Shown here: positions 39,613 to 42,600 of the stretch, piece by piece
Layout: every line of letters starts with the position of its first letter
Position numbering within the stretch: the stretch's first letter is position 1
Assembly: GCA_001949185.1 (NCBI GenBank)
Contig: BDGG01000004.1
Span: 707,620-771,619 of the forward strand
DNA from: Ramazzottius varieornatus
Taxonomy: Eukaryota > Animalia > Tardigrada
Length of the DNA stretch: 64,000 bases
Reading direction: 5' to 3'
Program-made: the position numbers and the translations under genes
Notes under the pieces: generated by a model
Told to the model about the DNA's origin: nothing
Databases searched by the model: none
Seen by the model: the letters and a program-made list of their open reading frames with translations, nothing else

Positions 39613-42600
39613 ATGTACCTGAGTGCCGTGTTTATATATCTGTGTGTCGCGGTGTCCCCATTAGAGGCCACAAGTAACACTTCAGATCTGATGAGCTTCG
39701 GCTCCTGGACTTTTGGAATACAAACCACAGCGGGGGATAACATTGATTTGAACTACTCCTTGGCCCAAGACGTCACTGATCAGCTCCAACTTCGCTGCTT
39801 CACCCATCTATGTACGAAGCGAAACCTCGACTGTAATGCTTTTTACCTGGTATCACCGGCCAGTTTCAGTTTCCTTCACGGCAACCTATCTCTCCATATC
39901 AAACTTCCGGCAGCCGGAAGTCCTTACAGCAGTATCCAGCTATGGCCCTTCCGCTGCCGATCATCCACCTGCCCACCGGGAAACACCACCTACATCACCT
40001 TCGAACTGTTTCGCAACACACCATACGCTATGTACTACACCTTGCACTACGTGGGGTCCTCGGGAACGGCTCGCACAGAGAGGCTGACTTCGCAGCGACC
40101 TCGGACTTCGCCTGAACCCTTCTACACCATTGGAATCATCTCCACTGCCGATCGTTTATCGTGGTGGTTTGACGGATCCGTGGTTGCTTCGTTCACTAAC
40201 CACCTGAGCCTTCCCAAAGAACCGATGTTCTTCCAGCTGGTGAAGTCCTGTTCTTCTGGAGGCATGGAGTCGATCTGGAATTCGCTTTCGGTCATGACCA
40301 TCGACAGCATAAAGTATCAAGAATCTGAAGAGCCGAGCAGACAAGAAGTGTTGCCATCTCCGGAGAGGAACTGGAAAGAGAATTACCACAACCAAATTGT
40401 CACGATGCAACTTATGGCGTACGACAACGATATTTCCGTCTACTTCGACGAGAATACTGTTGACGATAACGAAAGAAGCTGGATTTTCACTAATATTGGT
40501 CCACTTTGGCGCCACGCAAAGCAGCAATACGGTTCGCAAGACACCACAAGCAAACCTAGTCCGAGGCTGATTGCTGCTTTTCATTCCGGGAAAAACGAAG
40601 GCTGCAAGATAAGCTCCCAAAAACTCAGTGACAATAACCCTTCTGCAATCCAGTACGTCCTCGACTGCAAAACATACGACGCGGAAGTTTGGAACGACTT
40701 ATCTCCTTTATGGATGGAGCAAATTGCATCCTCAATGGCAGTCTTCGCGGCGAACTACGCTCACGATATTGCTGGAAATCCGGCTAGCGCCATCGATGGA
40801 TCAGCCGTCCAGTCCATCATTCTGTTTGACTTCTACATGGCTTTACGAATGAATGAGGACGCGAAAAAAGTGGTACAGAATGCGACAGAGCCAGTCCAGG
40901 ACGCGGTCAGCGGACCTTCCTGGTTTCGTGATTGGTACTTGCCACTGTACTATCGTTTCAACGGAAGCGAGCTTTTGAGCCGATATTTTCTCATCCTCTC
41001 GGAAAACTTCCCCTCGTCCTTAGACAGCCAGGGCGTGCGGCGTTATACTCGGAACATGACCAATGTCGGCGAGTTCGTGCATTTTTGGAGTGGCGCAGCG
41101 GGTGCCGATCTTCGAGACTTTTACAAGCTCGTATTTGGCTCCTGGTCAGCTAAAGACGAAGAGAGCTTCAAAGATGCTCAGCGAACGTTTCCGAAACTCA
41201 GGTACAGCTCCTCGCTGAGAGTTGAATTAGATTCCGACATCACAGAGCAAAATGTGACGGGAAGCGGAGGTAAAGCGCGAGCCTCGGTGATAGCACCGGC
41301 AGTGGTAGTTCCGGTGGTTGTCGTGCTCTTAGTAGGTTCAGTCATCTTTTACCACTGTCGGAAAAGAACAAAAAGCGCATTACGCAGACATGGACATACT
41401 CAAAAAATGGAGAAACTTGGACCCCAAAGCCTGTCGCAAGAAACTGAGTGGGCGATCCCCAACGCATACGAGCCGTATGGATTGCTGCTGAGCGATGAGA
41501 TACGACGCTATATTATTCCGCGAGAAAACCTTCACCAGAGTGAGTAAATTTCAAGTCATTGACTGTCGCTGTTTTACTTCGAAAGCTGTGATGTTGTCAG
41601 TTTTTTTCAGGTTCGAATGTACTTGGGAGCGGGCAGTATGGTACGGTGTACACTGCAACCGCGACTGGTCTGTATGGACGAGTAGGAACTGTACCTCTTG
41701 CCGCCAAAGTTTTGACCGGGAGCAATCCGGGAAACAGCGATCCCCCTACAAAGCTGTTCGAGAGGGAAGTCAACGTGATGCTGAAAGCGGGACAACATCT
41801 AAACATTGTGAACCTCCTTGGAATTGTTCTCGACGGTACGAGGAGTACCACAGACTACAGTACCAATGATTGTGATGTTCGAACGCAACCGGAAACGACG
41901 GTATTTTCGCATTTCAGAGTATCCCACCCTCTTGATGGAGCTGTGTGAATTCGGTTCTCTGCTGAACTACCTTCAGCAATGCCGTCCAACAGACGAATAT
42001 TTCGCCAACCTGGTGAATACCGATGGGGAGATAGTGGAACAAATCAACGATCCAAGGCGAGGTTCCACGGAATCGGCGTTTGCAGACACCAATGTGGACT
42101 CCGAGCGGAAGCTTTCGACCACCGATCTCGTCAGTTTTGCCTATCAGATCAGTCGGGGACTTGAGTATTTGGCAAGCAGGTCTATTATTCATCGTGATAT
42201 CGCTGCAAGAAATATCCTGGTTTCCAAGTACAAAATCGCGAAGGTGGCGGACTTCGGCATGGCTCGGTGGTCCGAGGTGGACTACATGACCGCAAACGCC
42301 AGCCAGGTACGTCCTAGACTAGTGCAGGATTTTTCAAAACTCAAATAGGGTGGAACTACCCTGATTGAGGTTTGGAAAATATCGATAGTTCTGATCCTGG
42401 CTTACAATTCTGGCCTCAGTGATCGACACGTCAACTTTCGACCTTTTTCTACGTGAAAACACGACAGTCCTGTCAGAGATCTTGTTGGTTGCAGCCAACG
42501 TCTATTGCAGGCGCAGTTCCCTGTAAGGTGGATGTCTCCCGAAGCCTTACTTTCGCTTTCATTTTCCGAAAGTACCGACGTTTGGTCCTACGGCGTGCTG

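Follow-up and report, generated by a model that had tools for sequence, protein, structure and literature searches.

Class III, IV and V receptor tyrosine kinases (RTKs), such as PDGFR, KIT, CSF1R and FGFR, are type-I membrane proteins with a split kinase that contains an insert and all catalytic motifs. The tardigrade Ramazzottius varieornatus has an expressed RTK of the same plan, RvY_08611. Its ectodomain, in contrast, has no Ig-like domains and is made of what appear to be two dead enzyme folds, one of them probably of bacterial ancestry. RvY_08611 is a 975-aa protein (database protein P0001) encoded on a 4.7-Mb scaffold, and the gene lies in the 64,000-nt stretch of DNA analysed here (the window; C4:707620-771619 in the 55.8-Mb assembly). 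A 644-aa open reading frame (ORF) at 39613-41547 on the + strand of the window is its first exon.

The closest described structural relatives of the second ectodomain fold are the MA-clan gluzincins, among them the M60-like O-glycopeptidases BT4244, AM0627 and ZmpA/B, the M30 peptidase lugdulysin, and the catalytic domains of M1 aminopeptidases. The predicted domain of RvY_08611 has in common with them a beta-sheet N-subdomain and a helical C-subdomain (Z 9.6-12.5). M60-like enzymes routinely carry CBM32/discoidin modules, as do the bacterial homologues of the RvY_08611 domain. However, it shares no more than 6-13% of its residues with these gluzincins, the Pfam models of M60, M1 and M30 do not match it, and RvY_08611 has no metal site.

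Recognition by dead enzymes has analogues in insect GNBP/betaGRP (an inactive GH16), in the tobacco chitinase-related receptor kinase CHRK1, and in the plant malectin-like and LysM receptor kinases. These follow the same logic, a hydrolase fold without catalysis being wired to signalling; they differ in fold, or in having another kinase class or no kinase. None of them is known to join an animal RTK to a zincin domain gained by horizontal transfer. Only a few functional transfers of genes from bacteria to animals are on record, those claimed for tardigrades are the most contested, and nearly all accepted cases are stand-alone enzymes.

It is probable that RvY_08611 is an RTK whose zincin domain came from a bacterial enzyme by an old transfer, was disarmed, and was reused as a binding module. 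The side of an animal receptor that faces the ligand thus contains a bacterial-type domain, encoded by the same exon as the membrane anchor, and the arrangement occurs in five paralogues. Such chimeras slip past 'HGT index' screens for horizontal gene transfer (HGT) because the full-length model has a strong metazoan kinase match.

Part of this history has been noticed before. In S4 Data of Yoshida et al. 2017 (PMC5531438), the Hypsibius dujardini entries bHd06618.1 and bHd14541.1 are in an orthogroup with RvY_18525 and RvY_14094, two paralogues of RvY_08611. These Hypsibius entries have best bacterial matches of 204.5 and 96.3 bits, compared with some 35 bits for the metazoan ones, are expressed, have the tree class 'prokaryotes' and are rated high-likelihood HGT; their annotation is only ConA-like/GH16 (PMC5531438). 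RvY_08611 and another paralogue, RvY_12498, were not found among the first 200 of the 273 supplementary files of PMC5531438. The public models RvY_12498 and RvY_18525 end after the juxtamembrane segment, before the kinase, and truncation of this kind probably explains why the Hypsibius homologues of RvY_18525 and RvY_14094 were flagged as HGT and the kinase fusion was missed. What was known before is therefore the HGT candidacy of the homologues of two paralogues; we found no description in the literature of the receptor architecture with its kinase fusion, of the protease ancestry, or of the function of the bacterial family.

Organization of the RvY_08611 receptor

RvY_08611, a receptor tyrosine kinase of type-I membrane topology, is expressed, and its ectodomain and kinase exons are on one spliced transcript. 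The evidence of expression consists of assembled contigs from four runs in four studies, all under one organism code and placed on 39300-43400; the sizes of these contig sets (16-27 Mb) and their spliced joints indicate that the contigs derive from RNA. One contig of 5261 nt crosses 39300-43180 through all four splice joints, and a 2612-nt contig of a strain diverged by about 1.7% extends from 39543, which is 70 nt before the ATG, to 42307 and contains two joints. Each exon was translated on its own, and the translations together match P0001. The preliminary description of the locus had assigned ectodomain and kinase to a single receptor, and the four studies agree with it.

The signal peptide, the extracellular region, the single transmembrane (TM) helix and the kinase are in one polypeptide, with a topology read from the sequence. 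Its order would be signal peptide, dead GH16-fold domain, zincin-fold domain, one TM helix, and a PDGFR/KIT/FGFR-like split tyrosine kinase. The start codon is followed by a hydrophobic, signal-peptide-like segment of 20 residues (aa 1-20; 39613..39672, +) that is the same as the N-terminus of P0001. The TM helix (aa 559-580, 22 residues; 41287..41352, +) is in the same ORF as the ectodomain and is followed by the stop-transfer sequence HCRKRTK. P0001 has precomputed Pfam tyrosine-kinase domains, including PF07714, and in a PDB sequence search the kinase is closest to KIT, CSF1R, FGFR1 and PDGFRA (E ~1e-60). The catalytic motifs GxGxxG, K, HRD, DFG and PVRW are intact (22 residues of motif, and PVRWMSPE), and the kinase insert is present.

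The first ectodomain fold (aa 22-243; 39676..40341, +) is modelled by AlphaFold2 as a GH16, ConA-like beta-sandwich with pLDDT 81.7. Its best structural matches in a Foldseek search of the PDB are bacterial laminarinases and lichenases (E 9e-12, TM 0.72). The catalytic motif E.D..E (ExDxxE) is absent from aa 1-250, and the GH16-like domains of the paralogues give weak PF00722 matches. A 257-aa protein from an 1875-nt ENA metagenome contig, P0218, is 60% identical to RvY_08611 aa 1-240 and has its own signal peptide; it stops where the zincin domain would start, at an intron or at the contig end. From its sequence, P0218 is probably an orthologue from another species, presumably a tardigrade in the environmental sample.

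Bacterial similarity in an animal gene may also arise from an assembly chimera or from contamination with bacterial DNA. Nothing beyond the similarity itself speaks for this, and its likelihood is negligible. One uninterrupted ORF runs from the GH16-fold domain through the second domain and the TM helix to the juxtamembrane part, the 4.7-Mb scaffold has an ordinary GC content near the gene, and six further loci with the domain bear introns. Contamination was rejected on the basis of the spliced RNA contigs in four studies, the diverged strain included. Signs of integration into an animal genome are the spliced RNA, a splice acceptor ahead of the domain at another locus (L006, see below), and a neighbouring ORF with a CBM14 domain.

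Bacterial relatives of the zincin-fold domain

The second ectodomain fold (aa 254-531; 40372..41205, +) is, judging by its homologues, an AlphaFold2 model and a VIA-align structural search, a putative zincin-fold pseudo-metallopeptidase domain of bacterial type. In large protein searches, aa ~250-535 matched secreted bacterial proteins at E 5e-31 to 1e-25 with 27-33% identity; in one of these, of 5.8 billion proteins, the self match was followed only by bacterial or unnamed proteins, with E values from 5e-31 upwards and identities of 27-32%. The preliminary description had recognized the domain by a motif series (78 residues in all), and with a bacterial E of 5e-31 this resemblance is far beyond chance. 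The named homologues are from Mucilaginibacter, Chitinophaga, Pedobacter, Streptomyces and Actinoplanes, and the groups represented are Bacteroidota, Paenibacillus, Myxococcota and Actinomycetota.

When 1.84 billion cluster representatives were searched exhaustively with HMMER, 216 of them matched at E<=1e-3. The top three were two R. varieornatus paralogues and one high-GC two-domain protein from a sequencing-run assembly, and eight bacterial representatives that were looked up are bacterial or metagenome proteins. Among bacterial and archaeal genomes, one for each species, 524 stretches were confirmed; the best 80 of the 524 are from Chitinophagaceae, Sphingobacteriaceae, Cytophagales, Paenibacillus, Myxococcota, Streptosporangiaceae, Ignavibacteriota, Armatimonadota and Teredinibacter. 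With tblastn, matches to bacterial genomes reached 4e-43 to 1e-33. The metagenome scan found no close orthologue, the best match being 33% identical. A search with the paralogue RvY_18525 returned only itself, and since the profile search also missed the R. varieornatus paralogues, these results have no bearing on Hypsibius.

The family had been expected in bacteria and fungi. The bacterial part of this expectation is amply borne out by the 216 representatives and 524 stretches; the fungal part is not, there being no fungal member among the named matches. Three protein searches on a large scale gave no named eukaryotic match besides R. varieornatus. The named relatives from other organisms are all bacterial, in line with the microbial origin first suggested; many of the matches are unnamed, and the searches covered no eukaryote genome collection.

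Neither Pfam, NCBIfam nor the PDB offers a sequence model that matches the domain in RvY_08611. When 65 members of the family were compared with Pfam and NCBIfam, the domain was left uncovered except for chance-level SprT and Reprolysin matches, and a profile search of PDB sequences with the domain gave chance matches only. One UniRef name within the bacterial family is 'Peptidase'; members from Mucilaginibacter, Chitinophaga or Pedobacter go by 'discoidin domain-containing protein', and Streptomyces has FN3 proteins. At the level of sequence, the domain is thus best described as belonging to an uncurated bacterial family rather than to one of the named peptidase families. The homology to this HExxHxxE family extends over the whole 280-aa domain, with the same predicted fold, an extracellular location, and an identical 12-residue motif in RvY_08611. 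The two differ in that RvY_08611 has no HExxH, no downstream Glu and no W.DSKW.E block, and has two extra invariant Cys. Their settings also differ: the bacterial domains stand on CBM, discoidin, FN3 or T9SS modules, and that of RvY_08611 stands with a GH16-fold domain, a TM helix and a tyrosine kinase.

Fusion partners in the homologues are discoidin/F5-8C, CBM6/35, FN3, AbfB, beta/gamma-crystallin and T9SS tails, and CBM5/12 is also common. The preliminary description had spoken of frequent ricin/CBM fusions, which is right for CBM (CBM6/35, CBM5/12) and wrong for ricin, found in one of 65 members scanned; discoidin/F5-8C, FN3 and T9SS are the other common partners. With hundreds of species-level members beside carbohydrate-binding modules and without a curated model or a described substrate, the bacterial family would be worth assaying. 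The nature of the bacterial partners (CBM32/discoidin, CBM6/35, CBM5/12), together with the M60-like structural neighbours, suggests by analogy that the ancestral enzyme acted on glycan-decorated substrates.

Predicted fold

The AlphaFold2 model of the domain, built from a 65-sequence alignment, has pLDDT 90.3 and pTM 0.89. It was compared exhaustively with 48,161 chains by VIA-align. The top 37 of these chains are all zinc peptidases (Z 12.5-6.5), and the matches cover 200-260 of 303 residues. They include puromycin-sensitive aminopeptidase (M1; Z 12.5), AM0627 (M60-like; Z 12.4), lugdulysin (M30; Z 12.3), BT4244 (Z 11.6), M61 (Z 10.9), ZmpA/B (Z 10.0-9.6) and thermolysin (M4; Z 9.0). Foldseek matches in the PDB were weak (best E 1.1e-3), yet all top matches were zinc metallopeptidases. 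The neighbours in the ESM Atlas were clusters of bacterial hypothetical proteins, followed by DUF6055 and a cluster of M60. Both searches, Foldseek and ESM Atlas, agree in direction, towards M60-like, M30 and DUF6055. The modelled domain accordingly has the thermolysin-like, two-subdomain fold of an MA-clan zincin (gluzincin).

Loss of the metal site and retention of the core

Motifs were counted by alignment column in 269 full-length domains. H-E-x-x-H-x-x-E is present in 217 domains and HExxH only in another 20, so that 237 of the 269 carry the HExxH motif that had been attributed to the bacterial members; a bacterial example reads T-H-E-V-G-H-I-V-E-G. The motif is absent in about 32 domains, including all six tardigrade copies. 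A Glu located 25 residues past the second His is conserved in 91% of the 237 HExxH-bearing members. This column (E401) presumably represents the third zinc ligand, an assignment based on the 25-residue spacing and the MA-clan fold.

In RvY_08611, the site of the bacterial HExxHxxE active-site helix reads SSMAVFAA (S373-S-M-A-V377-F-A-A380; 40729..40752, +), and S401 (40813..40815, +) is in the column of the conserved Glu. The residues at the HExxHxxE and downstream Glu columns are thus S373, S374, V377, A380 and S401, and those at the W.DSKW.E block are D395, S397, A398, V399 and S401. The alignment indicates that the zinc His pair, the catalytic Glu and the presumed third-ligand Glu are all substituted. 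It had been stated earlier that this place contains no His or Glu. This is correct for the equivalent positions (S373, S374, V377, A380) and incorrect for the 12-residue stretch then quoted, which has E369, four residues upstream of the catalytic position.

The loss extends well beyond HExxH and is confined to one part of the domain. Among the 237 HExxH-bearing members, 81 columns are conserved at >=80%. A contiguous block of these (H373, E374, H377, E380, S389, W395, D397, S398, K399 and E401; consensus residues in RvY_08611 numbering) is kept in none of the five receptor copies. All five keep Y277, W290, W299, W360, D406, W437, P444, F459, L462, F466, P467, Y478, H490, F491, S493-A496, F508, G509, A522, F526, P527 and Y531, which belong to the fold core. 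The best-kept family motif (15 residues, aa 486-500; 41068..41112, +) is identical to that of many bacterial members. The receptor copies have also gained two invariant Cys, at aa 331 and 352, where the bacterial proteins have a Gly and a variable residue. With the metal-site block replaced and the fold core conserved, it appears that the domain could not hydrolyse by the zinc mechanism of its family, yet keeps its shape.

The domain might instead be a structural spacer or stalk, or a fast-decaying relic, with the sensing done by the GH16-fold domain or another partner. Among the differences listed between two strains, the zincin domain has 1 synonymous and 7 non-synonymous changes, and the rest of exon 1 has 12 and 10 (Fisher p = 0.09). 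For exon 1 overall, the differences listed for the ~1.7% diverged strain (run X8) are 13 synonymous and 17 non-synonymous, with pN/pS ~0.38. The non-synonymous excess in the domain agrees with a spacer or relic, as does the fact that related receptors on C6 and C3 work with GH16-fold domains alone. The same strain differences are compatible with a fast-evolving binding surface as well as with relaxed constraint. The five receptor paralogues have 30-40% pairwise identity, yet all of them keep some 30-odd core columns and the domain itself; the 15-residue motif matches that of bacterial members without a difference, and the model is confident and compact. We therefore regard a mere spacer or relic as quite improbable.

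Paralogues in the R. varieornatus genome

The R. varieornatus genome has seven loci with the domain, and at five of these, RvY_08611 included, a GH16-fold domain, the zincin domain, a TM segment and a kinase occur together; the paralogue count invited by the preliminary description thus shows a five-member receptor family. The four other receptor copies are in two pairs, one on C7 (L002 and L005, C7:1839-1848 kb) and one on C19 (L003 and L004, C19:257-266 kb). The members of each pair are about 4 kb apart in divergent or convergent orientation, the C7 pair being head-to-head. All four encode a GH16-like domain, the zincin domain and a TM segment, and by genomic position a tyrosine-kinase exon follows 0.6-1 kb downstream on the same strand. 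The public models RvY_12498 and RvY_18525 belong to this group of four.

The two remaining loci are not receptors of this type. The C10 copy (RvY_14094) is a near-duplicate fragment. The other, L006 (C4:271457-272290, +), has a splice acceptor immediately ahead of the domain; a stalk rich in Ser, Thr and Pro comes next, then a TM helix and a tail of 25 residues, and no kinase is adjacent to it. Of the tardigrade copies, L006 is closest to the bacterial type, with identity to bacterial domains of up to 46%. At the HExxHxxE site it reads NEIGVIVEH; it keeps E374, E380, S389, P390, W395 and E401 and has lost both His and D-S-K. L006 may be an intermediate stage of decay, or it may be a second transfer.

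Kinases of this subfamily are also found with other ectodomains. A gene on C6 (L088, C6:1792500-1799500) combines GH16 (PF00722, 33 bits), a TM segment and a kinase, and one on C3 (L089, C3:1116500-1123000) combines two GH16-like domains with a kinase, both without the zincin domain. The closest kinase paralogue, on C16 (L087, C16:548500-556500), is 72% identical in one exon, and no recognisable ectodomain was found at that locus, part of which is a run of N. The kinase subfamily has swapped ectodomains repeatedly. In the homologue set, no bacterial protein pairs a tardigrade-type GH16 with the zincin domain. A two-domain bacterial donor is for this reason unsupported, and it was probably in the animal that the two dead-enzyme domains came together.

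Phylogeny and probable transfer history

A tree was built from 83 domains and 310 columns (LG+C20+F+G4 PMSF). The five receptor copies form one clade (100/95), which lies on a long branch and has as its sister P0053, a single, very long-branched, motif-less metagenome protein (92/89); this grouping may be an artefact. The nearest neighbours of L006 are a metagenome protein and a sequence from Chitinophagaceae (98/78), inside the Bacteroidota set (85/94). The six tardigrade copies are together in none of 200 bootstrap trees, and no strongly supported branch forces two origins. In a fast test (LG+F+G4), the single-origin constraint gave AU p = 0.058 and KH/SH 0.048. One transfer and two transfers are both compatible with the tree.

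From these relationships we infer an old transfer of the domain from a bacterium to a tardigrade. The domain would descend from secreted bacterial HExxHxxE...E enzymes of soil Bacteroidota, Paenibacillus, Myxococcota and Actinomycetota, and the family would have entered the tardigrade lineage by this old horizontal transfer. In the receptor copies, the zinc His pair would then have been replaced along with the catalytic Glu, the Glu presumed to be a ligand and the block around them, and the two Cys would have been gained. Because L006 looks like an intermediate, catalysis appears to have decayed inside the animal. The proposal of an HGT-derived, disarmed domain is in this way strengthened, with strong microbial similarity on one side and a catalytic block lost beyond HExxH on the other.

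The bacterial likeness could instead reflect deep common ancestry, if an ancient eukaryotic family had descended vertically and been lost nearly everywhere except in tardigrades. The RvY_08611 domain is only 27-33% identical to bacterial ones, and eukaryotic members may hide among the unnamed matches. Such a history is nevertheless very unlikely: the three large protein searches gave no named eukaryotic match besides R. varieornatus, L006 is 46% identical to a bacterial domain and falls inside Bacteroidota (98/78, 85/94), and the published phylogeny, in the supplementary data cited above, classes the Hypsibius homologues of two paralogues as 'prokaryotes' (PMC5531438).

It is also conceivable that the donor was already a pseudo-enzyme, a member that lost HExxH before the transfer, in which case nothing was disarmed in the animal. 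About 30 of the 263 non-tardigrade domains, from bacteria or metagenomes, are motif-less and lie in at least 8 separate clades. Motif loss has thus been repeated outside tardigrades, and pseudo-enzyme forms are not an animal invention. The bacterial two-domain protein P0034 has one intact and one degenerate copy, and the receptor clade groups with the motif-less P0053 and near P0143, P0104 and P0077 in FastTree and quick trees. These groupings, however, join the longest branches with weak to moderate support, so that long-branch attraction is likely, and L006, in which E374, E380, S389, P390, W395 and E401 are kept and the two His and D-S-K are lost, looks like a stage of decay in the animal. 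A pseudo-enzyme donor is for these reasons unlikely, while being the more serious of the competing histories, and disarming after the transfer is preferred. Tandem two-domain bacterial proteins with one intact and one degenerate copy occur (HELAH and REVSR in P0034), and P0206 is another of the members that show pseudo-enzyme forms outside animals.

Possible role of the ectodomain

With catalysis lost and the fold retained, the zincin domain would most likely serve to bind a ligand, be it a peptide, a glycopeptide or a glycan. Occupancy by the ligand, together with the dead GH16-fold domain, would drive clustering of the receptor and activation of the kinase. By analogy with the bacterial family, our best guess for the ligand is a glycopeptide or glycan, and the substrate of the bacterial family would be the best clue to it. 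The preliminary description had proposed a recruited ligand-binding module. Recruitment into an RTK is established by the single spliced RNA; ligand binding is our inference.

Several points weigh against a disarmed bacterial enzyme that was reused for binding. The strain differences in the domain could reflect relaxed constraint rather than a tuned binding surface. The joining of the four paralogues to their kinase exons is predicted from genomic order. The nearest relative of the receptor copies in the tree, P0053, is long-branched and motif-less and points to no particular donor lineage. Finally, most database matches are unnamed, so that there could be unrecognised eukaryotic members among them.

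A wider role may be proposed only tentatively, and we hold it to be rather unlikely. The receptors could constitute a tardigrade-specific RTK class whose sensing part combines disarmed hydrolases of microbial type, one with a GH16 glucanase fold and the other a bacterial zincin gained by horizontal transfer. They would recognize patterns in glycans or glycopeptides of microbes or of the cuticle, and feed innate-immune or moulting signals into tyrosine-kinase signalling.

Gene structure and neighbouring genes

The juxtamembrane segment extends from the TM helix to the end of exon 1 (41353..41539), where the contigs of four runs show a GT..AG joint. All four introns are of the GT..AG type, and all features of the gene are on the + strand. 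Intron 1 (71 nt, 41540..41610) is skipped in the contigs of all four runs. Kinase exon 2 (41611..41834) encodes the G-loop GSGQYGTV (aa 648-655) and AAK675, and is followed by intron 2 (82 nt, 41835..41916). Kinase exon 3 (41917..42303) encodes the kinase insert, HRDIAARN (aa 809-816) and DFG (aa 829-831); intron 3 (204 nt, 42304..42507) is skipped in the contigs of three runs. Kinase exon 4 (42508..42731) encodes PVRWMSPE (aa 851-858). After intron 4 (56 nt, 42732..42787), the last coding exon (42788..42953) contains the end of the C-lobe and the tail up to the stop codon, the position of which was computed from the length of P0001. Apart from that position, introns and kinase exons are taken from the RNA contigs, and the motifs of exons 2 to 4 from exon translation as well.

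The transcript contigs of RvY_08611 continue past the stop codon to about 43180. The 5261-nt contig also reaches 1793 nt further upstream of 39300, into the region of the neighbouring upstream gene, which may be due to read-through, to overlapping untranslated regions or to an assembly merge. Downstream of the gene, the ORFs at 43749-44579 and 44944-45360 on the - strand are Cys-/Thr-rich and have no Pfam match. The next ORF (45545-47101, -) encodes a chitin-binding peritrophin-A domain (PF01607, E 4e-11; CBM14).

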